Below are positions 30,019-63,155 of a DNA stretch of 64,000 nt, piece by piece. Every line of letters starts with the position of its first letter. Positions within the stretch are counted from its first letter, which is position 1. Both the position numbers and the translations under genes were made by a program. A model generated the notes under the pieces. That model ran no database searches and was not told where the DNA came from. It saw only the letters and a list, made by a program, of their open reading frames with translations. This stretch comes from Rebecca billardiae RCC1528 (lineage: Eukaryota; Protista; Haptophyta), in NCBI GenBank assembly GCA_965240325.2, contig OZ251223.1, positions 372,001 through 436,000 of the forward strand, in the 5' to 3' direction.

Positions 30019-31491
30019 TCAGCCCGCGATCGGCGGCCCCAGGTCGACCACCTTGCCGGGGTTGAGCAGGTTGTGCGGGTCGAGCGCGCGCTTGACCGCG
30101 CGCATCGCGGCGACGCCCTCGGCGCCGTGCTCCGCCTCGAGGTAGCCGAGCTTGCCCACGCCGATGCCGTGCTCCCCCGTGCACGTCCCGCCCACCGCGA
30201 GCGCGCGGCGCACCAGCCGCTCGTTCACCGCCTTCACCGCCGCCACGTACTCGGGCGGGTCGTCCTCCTTCACGCCGAGGATCACGTGGAAGTTGCCGTC
30301 GCCCGCGTGCCCAAACAGCGGCCCGCACACGTCGAAATCGGCGATGTCGCGCGCGGTCGCGCGCATCACCTCCGCGAGGCGCGAGATCGGCACGCACGCG
30401 TCAGTGACGATCCCCTTTGAGCCCGGCCGCAGCGCGAGCGACGCGTAGTACGTCGAGTGCCGCGCTGCCCACAGGTGCCGTCTCTCTGCCTCGCTAGTGG
30501 CCCATTTGAACTCGCCGCCGCCGTGCGCGCCGCAGCACTCGGCGGCGAGCTCGGCCTGCTCGGAGACCGACGCGTCGGAGATCCCCGTGAACTCGAGGAA
30601 GAGCGTGGGCACCGGCTCCAGGTCGGCCACCTCCTTCGGGTACGCGTTGAACGCCTCGATCGCCGTCGCGTCCAGCAGCTCGCACCGCGCGACCGGAATG
30701 CCGCATGCGAGGATGGATGTGACCGCGTTCGCCGCGCCGTCGAGCGTGTCGAAGGTGCACACGGCGGCGGAGCAGGCGGACGGGATGGGGTGCAGCCGCA
30801 CGCGCACCTCGGTGAGCACGGCCAGCGTCCCCTCCGAGCCCACGAGCAGCCGCGTCATGTCGTACCCCGCGCTCGACTTGCGCGCGCGCCCGCCGGTGCG
30901 CATCACCTCGCCGGACGCGAGGACGCTCGTCGTGCCCAGCACGTTCTCGCGCATCGTGCCGTACTTGACGGCGGCGGTGCCGCTCGCGCCGCACGCCGCC
31001 ATGCCGCCGATCGACGCGTCCGCGCCCGGGTCGATGGGGAAGTACAGCCCGGTGTGCCGCAGCTCCGCGTTGAGCGCGTTGCGCGTGACGCCTGCCTGCA
31101 CGAGCGCGTCAAAATCTTCCTCGTTCGCCTCGACGACCTGGTTCATCTCGGAGAGGTCGAGGCACACGCCGCCGTGGATCGCCTGGATGTGGCCCTCGAG
31201 GGACGTCCCCGTGCCGAACGGGATCACCGGCACGCGCGCCTCCGCGCACAGCCGGACGATCGCCGCCACCTCCTCTGTCGAGGTCGCGAACGCGACCGCC
31301 TGCGGCGGGATGGCGGCGTGGTGCGACTCGTCGTCGCCGTGGCGCTCGAGGATGGTGGGGTTGACGCTCACGCGGGTGCACGCCCCCTCCAGCCGGCCGA
31401 GCAGAGGCGCGCTGAGTGCGCTGTACGCCCTCGACCCCTTGGCTCGCCGCGCGGCAAGGATAGTGCGCGCCGTCCACGCCGCCGCCGGCAT
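30019..31491 (-). CDS. LDHD: D-lactate dehydrogenase (FAD-binding oxidoreductase type 4), mitochondrial
   Basis: PFGTGTSLEGH, FPIDPGADASIGGM, KSSAGYD, GSEGTL, GHAGDGNFH, GEHGIG, DP..LLNPGK. Confidence 0.92.
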   Translation of the reverse strand: MPAAAWTARTILAARRAKGSRAYSALSAPLLGRLEGACTRVSVNPTILERHGDDESHHAAIPPQAVAFATSTEEVAAIVRLCAEARVPVIPFGTGTSLEGHIQAIHGGVCLDLSEMNQVVEANEEDFDALVQAGVTRNALNAELRHTGLYFPIDPGADASIGGMAACGASGTAAVKYGTMRENVLGTTSVLASGEVMRTGGRARKSSAGYDMTRLLVGSEGTLAVLTEVRVRLHPIPSACSAAVCTFDTLDGAANAVTSILACGIPVARCELLDATAIEAFNAYPKEVADLEPVPTLFLEFTGISDASVSEQAELAAECCGAHGGGEFKWATSEAERRHLWAARHSTYYASLALRPGSKGIVTDACVPISRLAEVMRATARDIADFDVCGPLFGHAGDGNFHVILGVKEDDPPEYVAAVKAVNERLVRRALAVGGTCTGEHGIGVGKLGYLEAEHGAEGVAAMRAVKRALDPHNLLNPGKVVDLGPPIAG

Positions 31492-31540
31492 GCTGCGGGC
31501 CAAGAATGACGGCGCGCGCAGAAGAGTCACTACAAAAAGT

Positions 31541-33160
31541 CTCCGCCAGCGGAGCATCCGGGCAAGGGGCCCAGACCCTCCGCCGGCGGAGATTTTTGTG
31601 GCCACGAAAAATCCCCGCTGGCGGAGCATGGAATGCTCCGCTGGCGGAGCCTGGGCTTGCAGGAATGACACAACAAACGTACTAGTTATGGTATCAGAAG
31701 TCTGTCAACCACCGAACAGCAGTCACCTCCGCTGGCGGAGCTCGCTAATGAGCCATGCCTTTTGTAAACTAATACACTCGGCACTTGAACTGAGCTCCGC
31801 TGGCGGAGCTTCGGGGGCGCCGAATGCCATTCTTGATGACCCACCTGACTTGAACTGAGCTCCGCTGGCGGAGCGTCGGTGGTCAGCGCCGTGTGTCATA
31901 TCGGAGAAATAATGCTAAGCCTTTCAACGCATTCATACTCTGCTGTGCCACACATTCAACCTCCGCTGGCGGAGCTCACTGGCCTATTCGACTTGAACTG
32001 AGCTCCACTGGTGGAGCCTCGGCTGCGCCGAATGTCCTTAATCGATGACCCACTCTCGACTTGAGCTGAGCTCCCCTGGCGGAGCTTTGGTGGCGCCGCA
32101 TGTCATATTGGAGTAACGCGGAAGCGTCAACCGTAGTCATATCTATATTGAGACTCAACCTCCGCTGGCGGAGCTCGCGGACCTACTAGTATTCAACTTT
32201 AACTGAGCTCCGCTGGCGGAGCCTCGGCTGTGTCGAATGTCCTTATCGATGGCCGACGTCTTGACTTGAGCTGAGCTCCGCTGGCGGAGCTTTGGTGGCG
32301 CCGCATGCCATTTATGGGAATAATGTGAAGCCGTTAACCATAATCATATCCATATTGACACTCAACCTCCGCTGGCGGAGCTCACGGACCTATTCGACTT
32401 GAGCTGAGCTCCACTGGCGGAGCTTTGGTGGCGCCGCATATCATATTGGAGTAATGCGAAGCCGTCAACCGTAATCATACGTATCCATATTGATACTCAA
32501 CCTCCGCTGGCGGAGCTCACTGGCCTATTCGACTTGAACTGAGCTCCGCTGGCGGAGCCTCGGCTCCGCCGAATGTCCTTATCGATGGCCCACGTCTTGA
32601 CTTGAGCTGAGCTCCGCTGGCGGAGCTTTGGTGGCGCCGCATGTCATATTGGAGTAATGCAAAGCCATTAACTACCGTAATCATATCCATATTGACACTC
32701 AACCTCCGCTGGCGGAGCTCGCGGGCCTATTCAACTTGAACTGAGCTCCGCTGGCGGAGCCTCGGCTGCGCCGAATGTCCTTATCGATGGCCCACTTGAC
32801 TTGAGCCGAGCTCCGCTGGCGGAGCTTTGGTGGCGCCGCATGTCATATTGGAGTAATGCAAAGCCGTTAACTACCGTAATCATATCCATATTGACACTCA
32901 ACCTCCGCTGGCGGAGCTCGCGGGCCTATTCAACTTGAACTGAGCTCCGCTGGCGGAGCCTCGGCTGCGCCGAATGTCCTTATCGATGGCCCACGACTTG
33001 ACTTGAGCTGAGCTCCGCTGGCGGAGCTTTGGTGGCGCCGAATGTCATATTGGAGTAATGCGAAGTCGTTAACCGTAATACTATCCATATTGACACTCAA
33101 CCTCCGCTGGCGGAGCTCACGGACGTATTCAACTTGAACTGAGCTCCGCTGGCGGAGCCT
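31541..33160. repeat. Left subterminal array of the palindrome GAGCTCCGCTGGCGGAGCTC in ~200-bp higher-order units
   Basis: ~26 copies of ctccgctggcggag or variants; unit starts near 31958, 32157, 32364, 32499, 32701, 32901, 33099. Confidence 0.92.
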
Positions 33161-33789
33161 CTGCTTGTGGTTTGCTGCAATTGGGGCTGGGCAGCCTGGG
33201 CTCAGCATGGGGCAGCTGTTCACAGCCCAGGCGGGGCGTCACCGCCTGTGAGCCGTCGGTGGGCAGGGCCGACGGCGTCGCAGAGCTCATGCGTGGGAGC
33301 AGCGCGTCGAGGAAGCGATCAAGGTCGAGAAGGAAGGGGCAAGCAGCAGGGGCTGCCTGTACGTTTGTACATGCCTCCACACCGGTGCACATCACCCTTG
33401 CTCACTGCAGTCGTGAACAGTGCTGCCACTCATCTCATCATCGCTCACCATGCAGTGACGGCCGAGCTGCGGCGAACTCTCACAGGCACCGAACACGCAT
33501 CGGCTGTGCCCGCTGGTGCTGGTATGCGCTGTCCTCTACTTGCTGTCGGACAGCAAGGAGACGGCACAGCCGCATCTGCGAGCGGGCGAGGTGATGCTGT
33601 CCAGTGTCCTCTGCTCAGCGAGGCTGAGAGGCTGAGCACGGATCACGGATAGTGAGCCCTGGTATCTCAACGCATCCAGGAGAGCAGTTGGTGCATGCCT
33701 GTGCTCAGACGTGCAGGACCAACCATCCGGTGCTGATTCAAGCACCCGCGCCAACAGCGGCGGCACTCAACTCCACGCTGCTGATGCGG

Positions 33790-34700
33790 CCGCACAGCTG
33801 CAGGGATGGTACCACGGCGGGCGACGGCGGGCGCTGCAGCTGGCAGCTCGGTGGTGCCTGCCCGAGGGGCCTGGGCGCCGGGCGCACCGAGCGCGATGAC
33901 GCCTCTCGCATCGCCTAGCGCGCTGGAGCCGCTGTCATCCGATGCTGCTGTGCCCGCGCCCAGCTTGGGCTGCAGCAGCTGCGCTCGACTCCGCGCCGAG
34001 TGCGGCGGCAGCAGCGGGGATGGTGCCACCGCGGGCTGCGGCAGGCGCTGCGGCTGGCAGCTCGGTGGTGCGCGCCCGATGGGCCTGGGCGCTGGGCACA
34101 GCGAGCGCGGTGACGCTGCTCGCCTCGCCCAGCGCGCTGGAGCCGCTGCCATCGCGCGCTGCGCTGCCCGCGCCCAGCTTGGGCTGCCGCAGCTGCACTC
34201 AACTCCTCGCCGAGTGCGGCGGCAGCAGCAGGGATGGTACCACGCGGGCGGCGGCTATCACTTTGGCTGGCAGCTCGGTGGTGCCTGCCCGAGGGGCCTG
34301 GGCGGTGGACGCACCGAGCGCGATGACGTTGCTCGCCTCGCCCAGCGCGCTGGAGCCGCTGCCATCCGGCGCTGCGGTGTCCGCGGCTCCGCGCCCCGCC
34401 GGGGCAGCTAGCTGTCACAGCTGGCAGCTGCGCTCGACTCCGCGCCAGTGGGAGGGATGATGCCTCGGCGGGTGGTGGCGGTCGATGCAGCTGGCAGCTC
34501 GGTGGTGCGCGCCCGAGGGGCGTGACCGGCCTAGGCAGCAGCAGCTGCGCTGGACTCCGCGCCGATTGTGGCTGCAGCAGCAGGGAAGGCGCCACTGGCT
34601 GCGGCGGAGGTGGATGCAGCGATCAGCTCGGTTGTGTGCGCGCGAGGGGCCTGGGCGGCAGACGCGCCCAATGCGGTGACGCCGATGCACGCGTCCGATA
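33790..34700. repeat. ~214-bp GC-rich tandem units in the inner left arm (mirrored at ~35560-36430)
   Basis: ggcagctcggtggtgc recurs at 33842, 34056, 34269, 34493. Confidence 0.8.
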
Positions 34701-37061
34701 TGCTGGCCAGCAGCAGCCGTTGTGACACTTCTTCCGCCGGCTGACGGCAGCAGGCGGTACCATCGGTCACATTGGTGAATTCGAATCGGGGAGAACCCGG
34801 CAGGCCTCAGCCCCGGACACTGCTGCCTGCCAATGACCTGTGAGGGCCGCAGGCCTTCCGGGGCACGGGGGCCGCTGCGGTCAGCTCTTTGAGCTAGCCC
34901 GGCGCCGGGCGCGCGAACAAGTACGGCCCGGCGTCGGTGAGGCCGAGCAAGGCGCGCCGAAGTGCCGCGGCCCAGATCTCAGCGCACGCATCATCAGTAC
35001 TACGACATCACTGCGCCGCGGATATGCATCAGATAGCGCGACTGATGATGATGATGCGCCGCGCGCTCCCCGCTGACCGGAGCCCGACTACGAGTAGCAG
35101 GCGCGCATGATCTGAGCTGAGTACGTAAGTAGCCCGTGTCATCCAGTGGCGGTGTCACACTTATGTGACTCAGGAGTCGGAGGAGTCGTTATCGTCATAT
35201 CGTCATCATCATCATGAAGACGCGCAATAAAACGGTCATCAGGCGGACCTGCGCTACCATACGCCGTCAATGTAATGCTGAGGGCGAGGCCGGCAGCGTA
35301 GTCGTAACCTACTACTACTACGTACAGAAAAAAGTATAGCGCCATCATAAGAAGAGTAGCTGCGTGTGACTCGTCACCGCGTTCTCAAAACTCCTGCGCT
35401 GCTGATCGGGACTCGGACGTACGCCGTCTTAAGCCTATATACCGGCGTGCGGTCGCAAGTCAATTCACGCGGCCCCTGCGACTCAGCGGCTCACTCACCT
35501 GGCTCATACGCAGCAACCGAGCAGTCACGGAGATCTGAGCAGCAGCTGTTAATTACCAGCCTGCTGCTGCTGCTGCCTGCGGCCGCACGCGGCGTGGAGT
35601 CGAGCGCACAGTCCGCAGCTGCCCGAACGGTTCAGCAGCATCAAATGGCAGCGGCTCGAGCGTGATAGGGGAAGCGAGGGGCGTCAGCTCGCTCGGCGCG
35701 TCCGTCGCCCAGGCCCCTTGGGCAGGCACCGTCGAGCTACCAGCTGCAGCGACTGCCGCCGCTCGCCGTGGTACAATCCCTGCTGCTGCCGCCGCACGGG
35801 TGCGGAGTCGAGCGCACCTCGTGCTGCTCCGGCTGGGCGCGGACACCGCAGCGCCGGATGGCAAACGGCTCCAGCGCGCTGGGCGAGGCGAGCAACGTCA
35901 TCGCGCTCGGTGCGTCCACCGCCCAGGCCCCTCGGGCAGGCACCACCGAGCTGCCAGCCAAAGTGATAGCCGCCGCCCGACGTGGCAACATCCCTGCTGC
36001 CACCGCACTCGGCGCGGAGTCGAGCGCAGCTGCGGCAGCCCACGCTCGACGCGGGCACAGCAGCGCCCGGTGGCAGCGGCTCCAGCGCGCTGGGCGAGGC
36101 GAGCAACGTCACCGCGCTCGCTGCGCCCAGCGCCCAGGCCCCTCGGGCGCGCACCACCGAGCTGCCAGCTGCAGCGCCTGCCGCAGCCCGCGGTGGCACC
36201 ATCCCCGCTGCTGCCGCCGCACTCGGCGCGGAGTCGAGCGCAGCTGCTGCAGCCCAAGCTGGGCGCGGGCACAGCAGCGTCGGATGACAGCGGCTCCAGC
36301 GCGCTGGGCGATGCGAGAGGCGTCATCGCGCTCGGTGCGCCCGGCGCCCAGGCCCATCGGGCAGGCACCACCGAGCTGCCAGCTGCAGCGCCCGCCGTCG
36401 CCCGCCGTGGTACCATCCCTGCAGCTGTGCGGCCGCATCAGCAGCGTGGAGTTGAGTGCCGCCGCTGTTGGCGCGGGTGCTTGAATCAGCACCGGATGGT
36501 TGGTCCTGCACGTCTGAGCACAGGCATGCACCAACTGCTCTCCTGGATGCGTTGAGATACCAGGGCTCACTATCCGTGATCCGTGCTCAGCCTCTCAGCC
36601 TCGCTGAGCAGAGGACACTGGACAGCATCACCTCGCCCGCTCGCAGATGCGGCTGTGCCGTCTCCTTGCTGTCCGACAGCAAGTAGAGGACAGCGCATGC
36701 CAGCACCAGCGGGCACAGCCGATGCGTGTTCGGTGCCTGTGAGAGTTCGCCGCAGCTCGGCCGTCACTGCATGGTGAGCGATGATGAGATGAGTGGCAGC
36801 ACTGTTCACGACTGCAGTGAGCAAGGGTGATGTGCACCGGTGTGGAGGCATGTACAAACGTACAGGCAGCCCCTGCTGCTTGCCCCTTCCTTCTCGACCT
36901 TGATCGCTTCCTCGACGCGCTGCTCCCACGCATGAGCTCTGCGACGCCGTCGGCCCTGCCCACCGACGGCTCACAGGCGGTGACGCCCCGCCTGGGCTGT
37001 GAACAGCTGCCCCATGCTGAGCCCAGGCTGCCCAGCCCCAATTGCAGCAAACCACAAGCAG

Positions 37062-38483
37062 AGGCTCCGCCAGCGGAGCTCAGTTCAAGTTGAATACGTC
37101 CGTGAGCTCCGCCAGCGGAGGTTGAGTGTCAATATGGATAGTATTACGGTTAACGACTTCGCATTACTCCAATATGACATTCGGCGCCACCAAAGCTCCG
37201 CCAGCGGAGCTCAGCTCAAGTCAAGTCGTGGGCCAGATGTCGATAAGGACATTCGGCGCAGCCGAGGCTCCGCCAGCGGAGCTCAGTTCAAGTTGAATAG
37301 GCCCGCGAGCTCCGCCAGCGGAGGTTGAGTGTCAATATGGATATGATTACGGTAGTTAACGGCTTTGCATTACTCCAATATGACATGCGGCGCCACCAAA
37401 GCTCCGCCAGCGGAGCTCAGCTCAAGTCAAGACGTGGGCCATCGATAAGGACATTCGGCGGAGCCGAGGCTCCGCCAGCGGAGCTCAGTTCAAGTCGAAT
37501 AGGTCCGTGAGCTCCGCCAGCGGAGGTTGAGTATCAATATGGATATATGATTACGGTTGACGGCTTCGCATTACTCCAATATGATATGCGGCGCCACCAA
37601 AGCTCCGCCAGCGGAGCTCAGCTCAAGTCGAATAGGTCCGTGAGCTCCGCCAGCGGAGGTTGAGTGTCAATATGGATATGATTATGGTTAACGGCTTCAC
37701 ATTATTCCCATAAATGGCATGCTGCGCCACCAAAGCTCCGCCAGCGGAGCTCAGCTCAAGTCAAGACGTCGGCCATCGATAAGGACATTCGACACAGCCG
37801 AGGCTCCGCCAGCGGAGCTCAGTTAAAGTTGAATACTAGTAGGTCCGCGAGCTCCGCCAGCGGAGGTTGAGTCTCAATATAGATATGACTACGGTTGACG
37901 CTTCCGCGTTACTCCAATATGGCATGCGGCGCCACCAAAGCTCCGCCAGGGGAGCTCAGCTCAAGTCGAGAGTGGGTCATCGATTAAGGACATTAGGACA
38001 TTCGGCGCAGCCGAGGCTCCACCAGTGGAGCTCAGTTCAAGTCGAATAGGCCAGTGAGCTCCGCCAGCGGAGGTTGAATGTGTGGCACAGCGCAGAGTAT
38101 GAATGCGTTGAAAGGCTTAGCATTATTTCTCCAATATGACACACTGCGCTGACCACCGACGCTCCGCCAGCGGAGCTCAGTTCAAGTCAGGTGGGTCATC
38201 AAGAATGGCATTCGGCGCCCCCGAAGCTCCGCCAGCGGAGCTCAGTTCAAGTGCCGAGTGTATTAGTTTACAAAGGCATGGCTCATTAGCGAGCTCCACC
38301 AGCGGAGGTGACTGCTGTTCGGTGGTTGACAGACTTCTGGTATAACTAGTTTGTTGTGTCAATCCTGCAAGCCCAGGCTCCGCCAGCGGAGCATTCCATG
38401 CTCCGCCAGCGGGGATTTTTCGTGGCCACAAAAATCTCCGCCGGCGGAGGGTCTGGGTCTTGCCCGATGCTCCGCTGGCGGGG
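37062..38483. repeat. Right subterminal array (reverse orientation), one ~200-bp unit shorter than the left
   Basis: gagctccgccagcggaggttga near 37104, 37307, 37509, 37642, 37849, 38057 (6 copies vs 7 on the left). Confidence 0.9.
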
Positions 38484-38727
38484 ATTTTTTGTAGTGACTG
38501 CCCTGGCGCGCGCCAACTCGCCCAGTCCGCCACCGAACTTCCGGACCGCGCGCTGCGGCGAGTCTGATGAAACGCCGAGGCTCATCGGCGGCTTCGGCAA
38601 CGCGAACGCTGAGGCGAGGGCGCAAGCTCTTGACGAGGACAGCGCGCCGCCCGGCCACGACCCACCGCCCGGCCGCGTCGCCGCTGGACGGGTGGAGCAC
38701 ACTCGCGCCACGATTTTCTCCCCGGCC

Positions 38728-40158
38728 ATGGCGATCGCATGTCTGCTCGCGCGCTCCGCGCCAGGGAGCGTGCGCGGGGCGCTCCGCCCCCTCGCCACCC
38801 CGTTCAGGGCGTCGGTGGCGGCGGTGATGGCGAGCTCGACGGTCGCCAACGCGCGGCCGATGTCGACGTGGAACAACGTGCCGATGGGCCCGGCTGACCC
38901 GATCCTCGGGCTCACGGCGGCGTTCAACGAGGACACCGACCCGCGCAAGGTCAGCCTCGGCGTCGGCGCGTACCGCGACGGCGCGGGCAAGCCGATGGTG
39001 CTCGACAGCGTCCGCGCGGCCGAGCAGCAGATCGTGGCGGCCAAGATGAACAAGGAGTACCTCGGGATCGTGGGCCTGCCCGAGTTCATCACGCGCGCGG
39101 TGGAGCTCATGCTCGGCCCCGGCTCGCTGTCCGACGGCAACATCGCCGCCGTGCAGACGCTCTCGGGCACGGGCGGCTGCCGTCTCGTCGGCGACTTCTA
39201 TTCGCGCTTCCTCGGCGCCAGCACGCCCATCTACCTGCCCAACCCGACGTGGGCGAACCACAAGAACATCTTCCGCGACGCGGGGCTGGACGTGCGCGCG
39301 TACCGCTACTGGGACCCGGACACGCTCGGCCTCGACCTCGACGGCATGCTCGCCGACATCGAGGGCGCGCCCGAGGGCTCTGTCGTGTTGCTGCATGCGT
39401 GCGCGCACAACCCGACCGGCGTCGACCCGACGCCGGAGCAGTGGGCGCAGATCTCGGACGCGTGCGCGAAGAAGAACATGTACATCTTCTTCGACGCGGC
39501 GTACCAGGGCTTCGCCAGCGGCGACCCCGACCGCGACGCGCACGCCGTGCGCCTCTTCCTCGAGCGCGGGCACCGAATGGCTCTCTGCCAGTCGTTCGCG
39601 AAGAACTTTGGCCTTTATGGCGAGCGCGTCGGCGTCCTCTCGATGATCTGCGCGGACAAGGACGAGGCGAAGCGCGTCGAGAGCCAGCTGAAGATCCTGA
39701 TCCGGCCGATGTACTCCAACCCGCCCCTGCACGGCGCCCGGATCGTCAGCAAAATCCTCGGCGACAAGGTGCGCGCGCGCGTGCGCGCGCCCGAGCCCGC
39801 GCGCGCCGCCACGCGCTCACCGCGCGTGCCGCGTGCCGCGTGCCGCGCCGGCTGGCGCACCCCGCAGGCGCTCGATTCGCAGTGGCGGGGCGAGTGCAAG
39901 GGGATGGCCGAGCGCATCATCTCGATGCGCACCGCGCTGCGCACCGAGCTCGAGAGCCTCGGCTCGACGCGGCCGTGGAACCACGTGACGGACCAGATCG
40001 GCATGTTCTGCTACTCGGGCATGACGGAGGAGCAGGTGCTGCGGCTGCGCTCGGAGTTCCACGTGTACATCACCAACGACGGCCGGATCAGCATGGCGGG
40101 CGTGACGGCGGATAACGTGCGCTACCTCGCCGAGGCGATGCACGCGGTCACCAAGTGA
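38728..40158 (+). CDS. GOT2: Aspartate aminotransferase, mitochondrial
   Basis: [63 protein letters not shown]. Intron 39769-39867. Confidence 0.95.
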
Positions 40159-61667: not shown

Positions 61668-61998
61668 GGTTCGGGGGAGGCCGCGCGGGCGCGGGGGGGG
61701 GGCCTTTCCACACGAAATTTTGACCGGCATCAGTTGGCTTACACCGACCGAAATATTCAAAGGACTGCTGATGACTCCATTACCCAACCATGGGAAACGC
61801 GTCATCAAACGCCGGCCCGATATCTAATGCGGGTTGGTTTAAGTTCGAATGTGTTGATACGTGAGTGGACTTGAGTGCTTTTTACTCAGTGCTATCGCCC
61901 TTATCATTTCACCAGGTTGTCATCATCAGCCAATAAAAACGTCTCATCAGCTGTTAACCAAGTATTCACAGTTACCCGCGGGGTGCCTTACGACGACA

Positions 61999-63051
61999 GA
62001 GGCCGCTCGAGCGACTTCGTGTCTGGCGAGGCAGATCGCGCCAGTGCGTGGCGAGGCAGACGCTCGCCTGCCTCGCCGCTTGGCGAGGCAGCTAAGCTAG
62101 TAAAGCCGCGGCCGAACTTTACGAAAGCCAAATGTCTGCCGGTGCGCCGCCCGTCTTTTGCGCACGGTGACAAGGGCGCGCGAGGGCGCGTCCTCACGAT
62201 CCCGAAGAGCGCTGCGCGCGGCGTCGCGTTGGCGGCGGCAGCGGCGCTGGGGTGTATCTTGCCCATTCTGCGTGGCGGCGCGCTCTCATGACGCCTCGGC
62301 CGCCGCCACGCCATGCGCGACCGGGCGTGTCGCCTTCTTGACGGGCAGTGCACACGCCCTTGCAAGCGCACAGCCGTGAAGAGCCGAGAGCGTCCGTCGC
62401 GAGCACGCCGCCCACGCGGGATGCGTTGCCAGGGCTATTCGTATGACACTGGGTGCTCGCGCTCTGGCATGTGCGAGCCAGGATGACCATGGGTAGCAGC
62501 TACGATGAGCACTGCTAACCTGCATTCAGCCGATGACATCCTCTCGTTCAGCGATCTTGACTGCTCTGAACGCATGGCGAACTCGGCGAAGCGCATGCGC
62601 AAGGTGGCTTCGGTGACAACATAACGCATCCCGCGTGGGCGGCGTGCTCGCGACGGACGCTCTCGGCTCTTCACGGCTGTGCGCTTGCAAGGGCGTGTGC
62701 ACTGCCCGTCAAGAAGGCCACACGCCCGGTCGCGCATGGCGTGGCGGCGGCCGAGGCGTCATGAGAGCGCGCCGCCACGCAGAATGGGCAAGATACACCC
62801 CAGCGCCGCTGCCGCCGCCAACGCGACGCCGCGCGCAGCGCTCTTCGGGATCGTGAGGACGCGCCCTCGCGCGCCCTTGTCACCGTGCGCAAAAGACGGG
62901 CGGCGCACCGGCAGACATTTGGCTTTCGTAAAGTTCGGCCGCGGCTTTACTAGCTTAGCTGCCTCGCCAAGCGGCGAGGCGGGCGAGCGTCTGCCTCGCC
63001 ACGCACTGGCGCGATCTGCCTCGCCAGACACGAAGTCGCTCGAGCGGCCTC
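61999..63051. mobile_element. Young foldback/MITE element: 429-bp TIRs, 195-bp spacer, 5-bp TSD CGACA
   Basis: 61999-62427 is the reverse complement of 62623-63051 with about two mismatches seen; cgaca at 61994-61998 and 63052-63056. Confidence 0.9.
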
Positions 63052-63155
63052 CGACAGTTGTCGTCGTCGACCTCGTCAGGCCTCAAAGCACCAGGGAGAT
63101 GCATGGGTACCAAATCAAAGGCGAGTGAGCATGTTGGCGTCGGCAAGGCCGTCCC

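Follow-up and report, generated by a model that had tools for sequence, protein, structure and literature searches.

A 64,000-bp stretch of the genome of the haptophyte Rebecca billardiae RCC1528 (assembly GCA_965240325.2, contig OZ251223.1, positions 372,001 to 436,000 of the forward strand), hereafter the window and numbered from its first base, contains a largely palindromic element of 6,987 bp (31519-38505). This element is very probably a non-autonomous foldback-type cut-and-paste DNA transposon. It is real, well delimited, and recently active, and it belongs to a known kind of transposon. A first description made from the letters of the window (the sequence-only reading) had proposed a foldback-type mobile element without its own transposase and a genome search for further copies; this search finds them at different sites, 16 copies being two-ended, of which seven are near-identical and accompanied by target site duplications (TSDs). 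The same description had assigned the element to the CACTA (EnSpm) superfamily, an assignment that the true ends of the element do not sustain.

Limits of the element and target site duplications

The genome (72 Mb in 41 contigs) was searched with the element's initial 233 bp, and 19 matched places were compared together with their flanks. The giant inverted repeat bounded by CACTA words, as first described, is real, with arms at 31528-34385 and 35838-38496. The CACTA words, however, are not the termini: on each side, the copies agree for another 9 bp outward, and 7-bp duplications follow. The 9 bases outside the CACTA word are common to all 16 two-ended copies (CAGAAGAGT preceding CACTAC... 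on one side, ACTGCCCTG following ...GTAGTG on the other), so that the element starts with CAGAAGAGT, ends with ACTGCCCTG, and has CAG...CTG tips. The triplets AGT and ACT found beside the CACTA words belong to the inverted repeat and do not form a direct repeat. The ends of the window copy are as follows.

31512..31518, no strand: left TSD copy, GCGCGCG; the same 7-mer abuts both true ends, and six other copies display the same pattern with other 7-mers
31519..31541, plus strand: true left terminus, CAGAAGAGT then CACTACAAAAA (the "AAG" end), from the comparison of copies
38483..38505, minus strand: true right terminus, ...TTTTTTGTAGTG then ACTGCCCTG (the "GGC" end; CAGGGCAGT on the other strand), from the comparison of copies
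38506..38512, no strand: right TSD copy, GCGCGCG, abutting the true right end

Fifteen of the two-ended copies have readable flanks on both sides, the sixteenth being left out of the count because of an N at one flank. Perfect 7-bp direct repeats lie directly outside the true tips in seven of these 15 copies, each with its own 7-mer, the probability of a perfect match arising by chance being ~6e-5 per copy. One of the other eight readable copies has a single mismatch in the 7-mer. The perfect TSDs are listed below.

Window copy: GCGCGCG
L031: GTTCAGC
L032: CCCTCGC
L033: TGATGTA
L040: CGAATGC
L041: AGCCACC
L044: GTCGGAA

A target-site logo built from eight sites (eight different 7-mers) reveals no clear motif. 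Copy L036 (G000 C5:2479842-2487035) is irregular: one of its tips is CTG instead of CAG, it lacks matching flanks, and the last 8 bases of its other tip recur in inverted orientation in the flank, 3 bp past that tip. A footprint or a rearrangement could account for this irregularity.

Reading inward, CAGAAGAGT precedes one CACTAC and CAGGGCAGT precedes the other in every two-ended copy. One AAG-type and one GGC-type tip are thus present per copy in 16 of 16 cases, including the members of a subfamily of ~88-90% identity. The conservation of this pair in every copy argues that the two ends are distinct by design.

Copies and age of the family

The genome contains exactly 34 occurrences of the terminal 13-mer AGTCACTACAAAA, corresponding to 16 pairs and two solo ends, and one-mismatch matches stay at background level. 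All 16 two-ended copies are palindromic, with arms of 2.7 to ~3.7 kb, and their length variation mostly reflects the number of tandem units. Seven copies, distributed over five contigs, measure 6,987 or 6,989 bp and share 99.84-99.93% identity with the window copy. In the alignment of these seven copies, each of the 23 variable columns reflects a change in one copy only, the number of changes per copy ranging from one to seven. This star pattern of private changes points to a very recent burst from one master sequence. A scan of metagenomes with a 34-nt end pattern gave no match.

The sharp ends of homology, together with a separate duplication for each copy, indicate transposition, and not segmental duplication or a mirror join made during assembly. 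An assembly artefact or a segmental duplication has little to recommend it beyond the unusual symmetry of the element and the fact that no second haplotype contig with an empty site is present in the assembly, in which the sequence to the left of the window copy occurs only once. Against it stand the seven near-identical copies on five contigs, which have the same sharp end bases and a different 7-bp duplication each. The sequence-only reading had already argued against an assembly mirror from the single-nucleotide differences and the one ~200-bp unit that distinguish the two arms, and these differences do recur in every copy. The artefact can therefore be given practically no credence.

Arms, repeats, and centre

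The two arms, of 2,867 and 2,668 bp, surround an unpaired centre that had been estimated at ~0.9-1.4 kb and measures 1,452 bp, and 79% of the element consists of inverted arms. Self-comparison of the window yields two inverted blocks, 32599-34385 versus 35838-37629 (97.3% identity over 1.8 kb) and 31528-32966 versus 37057-38496 (96.1% over 1.46 kb). These blocks are offset by ~200 bp, which corresponds to one tandem unit of the left arm that the right arm lacks. The parts succeed each other as follows.

31519..33165, plus strand: left outer arm, with a hairpin-rich terminal 260 bp followed by ~7 tandem units of 135-205 bp
33168..33748, plus strand: left unique arm segment, 581 bp
33755..34385, plus strand: left array of a 214-bp GC-rich satellite, 2.9 units
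34386..35837, no strand: unpaired centre, 1,452 bp, non-coding
35838..36422, minus strand: right array of the 214-bp satellite (the whole array is delimited by Tandem Repeats Finder at 35645-36422, 3.7 units)
36474..37054, minus strand: right unique arm segment, mirror of 33168-33748
37057..38505, minus strand: right outer arm, with ~6 tandem units, one fewer than in the left arm, and the palindromic motif on the plus strand

Each unit of the left outer arm contains two to three copies of a 16-nt palindrome, GCTCCGCCAGCGGAGC, read on the minus strand. With up to two mismatches allowed, this motif is matched 70 times in the 64-kb window, and all 70 matches fall inside the element, in the outer 1.65 kb of the arms, compared with 0.8 matches expected by chance. 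Its orientation is opposite between the two arms. The terminal 150 nt are predicted to fold with -49 kcal/mol (z = -7.0 versus shuffled sequences). The GC content is ~72% in the flanks, 54-58% in the outer arms, and 75% in the inner 214-bp satellite. This satellite is also found at many loci outside the family, whereas the centre is private to it, the first 1,173 bp of the latter being found only in the 16 two-ended copies.

The element has no coding capacity. The ten open reading frames (ORFs) from the arms and the centre have no Pfam match, in agreement with the claim that no transposase lies inside, and Rfam gives no match above threshold within the element. The sequence-only reading had further suggested that the element may provide outward promoters to both genes and could give rise to long dsRNA or cruciforms; on general grounds, extrusion of a cruciform with a 1.45-kb spacer is unlikely.

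Homogenisation of the arms

The 581-bp unique segment makes it possible to compare the divergence between arms with that between lineages. Within a single copy, the left and right versions of this segment are 99.3-100% identical (99.8% in the window copy). Between the two main subfamilies, the same segment is 95.5-96.5% identical, i.e., it differs by 3.5-4.5%. Since the arms of one copy diverge less than the subfamilies do, a result that free drift after a single palindrome origin could not give, the arms are being homogenised within each lineage, through conversion or through re-copying between the arms. This process spares the tips, the asymmetry between CAGAAGAGT and CAGGGCAGT being present in both subfamilies.

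Relation to known transposons

Several features define the element as a foldback: its arms make up most of its length, they are built of tandem units of 135-214 bp, its middle is non-coding, and several copies are flanked by target duplications. CACTA/EnSpm elements produce a 3-bp (2-4 bp) TSD, have a terminal CACTA(C/G), and are mobilised by a Transposase_21-type DDE partner. The literal CACTACAAAAA near both ends and the subterminal repeat arrays recall such elements and are what a foldback derivative of CACTA would have in its favour. The CACTA word, however, lies 9 bp inside the ends common to 16 of 16 copies, and the duplication is of 7 bp and not of 3 bp. Furthermore, Transposase_21 (PF02992) has no match in the genome at E values up to 10, although the control genomes gave none either. 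Membership of the CACTA superfamily is hence extremely improbable. The CAG... tips resemble those of hAT and P elements; hAT elements produce an 8-bp TSD and have short terminal inverted repeats (TIRs), and neither the TSD length nor the arm length fits them here.

The closest described design is that of Galileo, a Drosophila transposon of the P superfamily. Galileo makes 7-bp duplications, as does 1360 (PMC3698922), and the 7-8 bp TSD that marks the P superfamily (Galileo/1360) is present in the family. The long TIRs of Galileo contain ~210-bp tandem repeats in numbers that are unequal between arms, gene-less copies made of two TIRs occur, and some copies have non-matching 7-mers (PMC3573991). 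The element shares with it the 7-bp TSD and the ~200-210-bp tandem units unequal between long arms. It shares with the gene-less "2T" copies an organisation in two arms and a spacer, the unmatched flanks of some copies, and the short motifs reiterated in the arms. In Galileo, the THAP domain of the transposase has been shown to bind reiterated motifs in the arm repeats (PMC3688188). The differences are also clear. The arms of the present family reach 2.7-3.7 kb, compared to at most ~1.26 kb in Galileo, and also contain the 214-bp satellite, which other families have as well. Their sequence shows no similarity to that of Galileo, their host belongs to the haptophyte algae, and a transposase-bearing copy of the family is absent from the assembly. 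The P superfamily is hence a candidate assignment.

Most described foldbacks have been placed in the Mutator superfamily, including the Drosophila families FB and Tetris, which make 8-10 bp duplications (PMC4079207). These two resemble the present family in their foldback form, in the tandem repeats of their arms, in their non-coding middle, in the occurrence of satellite-like units beyond the element, and in that no autonomous copy has been found (PMC4079207). A foldback of the Mutator type, comparable to FB, Tetris, or the nematode Tm1, would thus conform to the assignment of most described foldbacks (PMC4079207); it is quite improbable here, as the 8-10 bp TSD of those families (PMC4079207) contrasts with the 7 bp observed in every clean case. 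Dada elements make 6-7 bp duplications, a length compatible with that observed, but lack TIRs and have fixed insertion sites within small-RNA genes (PMC3706591); the kilobase-long inverted arms, the eight different target 7-mers, and the absence of a small-RNA gene set them aside.

Search for an autonomous partner

Candidates for an autonomous partner were sought first among the relatives of the family. The longer relatives L036-L045 (7.2-9.4 kb) were rejected as autonomous copies: their extra length consists of repeat units or, in L038, of a nested 2.4-kb TIR element. The latter (L038:1008-3413, in a 9.4-kb family copy on G000 C27) is unrelated to the family, is inserted in one arm, and possesses perfect 36-bp TIRs and a 2-bp duplication (AT). 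The one-ended or fragmentary loci L046-L049 were rejected as transposase carriers, as they run into host genes; the translations of their host ORFs, judged by eye, are GNAT-like, short-chain dehydrogenase-like, pseudouridine-synthase-like, and methyltransferase-like.

The Pfam families Tnp_P_element and RAG1 have no match in the genome. Pfam TNP-like_RNaseH_N matches the genome at one place (C21:1533970-1534365, minus strand), within an open frame of 1,322 codons.

G000 C21:1532842-1536800 (L050:373-3396), minus strand: P-element/THAP9-type transposase gene, with an uninterrupted 1,322-aa frame, identified by PF21787 and a PDB match

In the 986 residues of this ORF that were read, PF21787 scores 32.9 bits, above its cut-off, and weak collinear matches to GBD (the GTP-binding insertion) and RNaseH_C are also found. 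The only PDB match is the Drosophila P transposase (6P5A), over the PHLIK..RN and the final ..E..FG..R motifs. This P-type gene is a candidate enzyme for the foldback family, a lead and not a result. It may be considered more generally as a candidate for the CA...TG / 7-bp foldback families of this genome, or as a domesticated gene. A repeat of ~190 bp, described below, adjoins it.

Proposed mechanism

The following scheme is proposed for the non-autonomous foldback transposon. A transposase supplied in trans would bind the reiterated palindromes of the arms and pair the AAG-type tip with the slightly different GGC-type one. The element would then be cut out and reinserted through a 7-bp staggered cut. 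The enzyme would most likely belong to the P superfamily, in which 7-bp duplications are known from Galileo and 1360. The window copy would have inserted into the 242 bp that separated the start codons of two divergent genes and, in doing so, must have changed the 5' leader or the promoter of the D-lactate dehydrogenase-like (LDHD-like) gene (see below).

Several observations weigh against this scheme. No autonomous copy with these ends is present in the assembly, where the terminal 13-mer and the context of the first subterminal motif occur only in the known gene-less copies. The P-type gene on C21 is single-copy, the terminal 13-mer of the family is absent from its region, and it may be domesticated. 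Binding of a protein to the palindromes is suggested by analogy only. Finally, four of the 15 readable copies have no matching duplication and three others share only 4-6 bp; among the four copies with non-matching flanks, inspection revealed no swapped duplications that would be a sign of inversion.

That no P-type element with matching ends was found in the genome also leaves room for a non-P enzyme that makes 7-bp duplications as well, for which a RAG1-fold protein is a candidate; the likeness to Galileo would then be convergent. This alternative is a serious one, albeit rather unlikely: Pfam RAG1 has no match in the genome, and the Transib and CMC elements described so far leave TSDs of 2-5 bp. 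A broader form of it appears doubtful. It holds that a non-P enzyme (e.g., of RAG1 fold) drives both the family and the foldback families that share its 214-bp satellite (CA...TG / 7-bp), that the arms are re-copied during transposition or repair, and that these elements form a new haptophyte foldback system with a preference for gene 5' regions. If true, the promoters of genes may be rewired by such a system.

Insertion site and flanking genes

As stated by the sequence-only reading, the element splits the short interval between two divergent genes; it lies 20-27 bp upstream of one of their ATGs. The genes on both sides are the following.

30022..31491, minus strand: FAD-linked oxidase (D-lactate dehydrogenase-like) of 490 aa, encoded apparently without introns, with FAD_binding_4 (PF01565) and FAD-oxidase_C (PF02913); GC content at third codon positions (GC3) 0.96
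38728..40155, plus strand: class I/II aminotransferase (aspartate aminotransferase-like), PF00155

The distances to the two ATGs had been given as 36 and 231 bp. They are correct when counted from the CACTA words; from the true ends, they become 27 bp for the LDHD-like gene (20 bp plus the duplication) and 222 bp, including the duplication, for the aminotransferase. Before insertion, the ATG-to-ATG spacer measured 242 bp. Public assemblies, queried for the LDHD-like protein, gave no record. In the 500-bp flanks of all copies, six coding-like stretches (GC3 of at least 0.86) are present, five of which point away from the element. In this small sample, their direction fits a landing of the elements in gene 5' regions.

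At both ends of the window copy (31492-31650, minus strand, and 38377-38727, plus strand), ATGs located in the element open outward reading frames that continue in phase, uninterrupted by a stop, up to and through the start codons of the two flanking genes. According to a rough estimate, such an arrangement at both ends would arise by chance in ~2% of cases.

Other repeats

The ~190-bp repeat mentioned above has 973 first-look candidates in the genome and a CAG-type tip (...TAGTAAACTG). It is found at L050:1-188, L034:7619-7799, L040:8214-8272, and L048:9521-9624, as well as in both flanks of the L038 copy, which is inserted inside such a repeat. It lies at most 500 bp from the element ends in four of the 18 family copies with flanks, and within ~1.1 kb of them in two more. 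The window also contains two further small hairpin-shaped repeats (61990-63067 and 1229-2277), one having 429-nt arms that are 100% complementary and a 195-nt loop, and the other 299-nt arms that are 93% complementary.

Significance

The 7-bp duplication and the CAG tips correct the class assignment of the element, which is not that of CACTA. To our knowledge, the mobile elements of haptophytes have barely been described, and the present family provides a case in which a transposon has been active very recently in such an alga. The single intact P-type transposase gene offers a concrete candidate enzyme. The arms, homogenised and yet ending in asymmetric tips, form a clean data set on the upkeep of giant inverted repeats. 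The seven near-identical copies can serve as presence/absence markers between strains, and the window copy, 20-27 bp from a start codon, constitutes a natural test of the effect of an insertion on two divergent genes.

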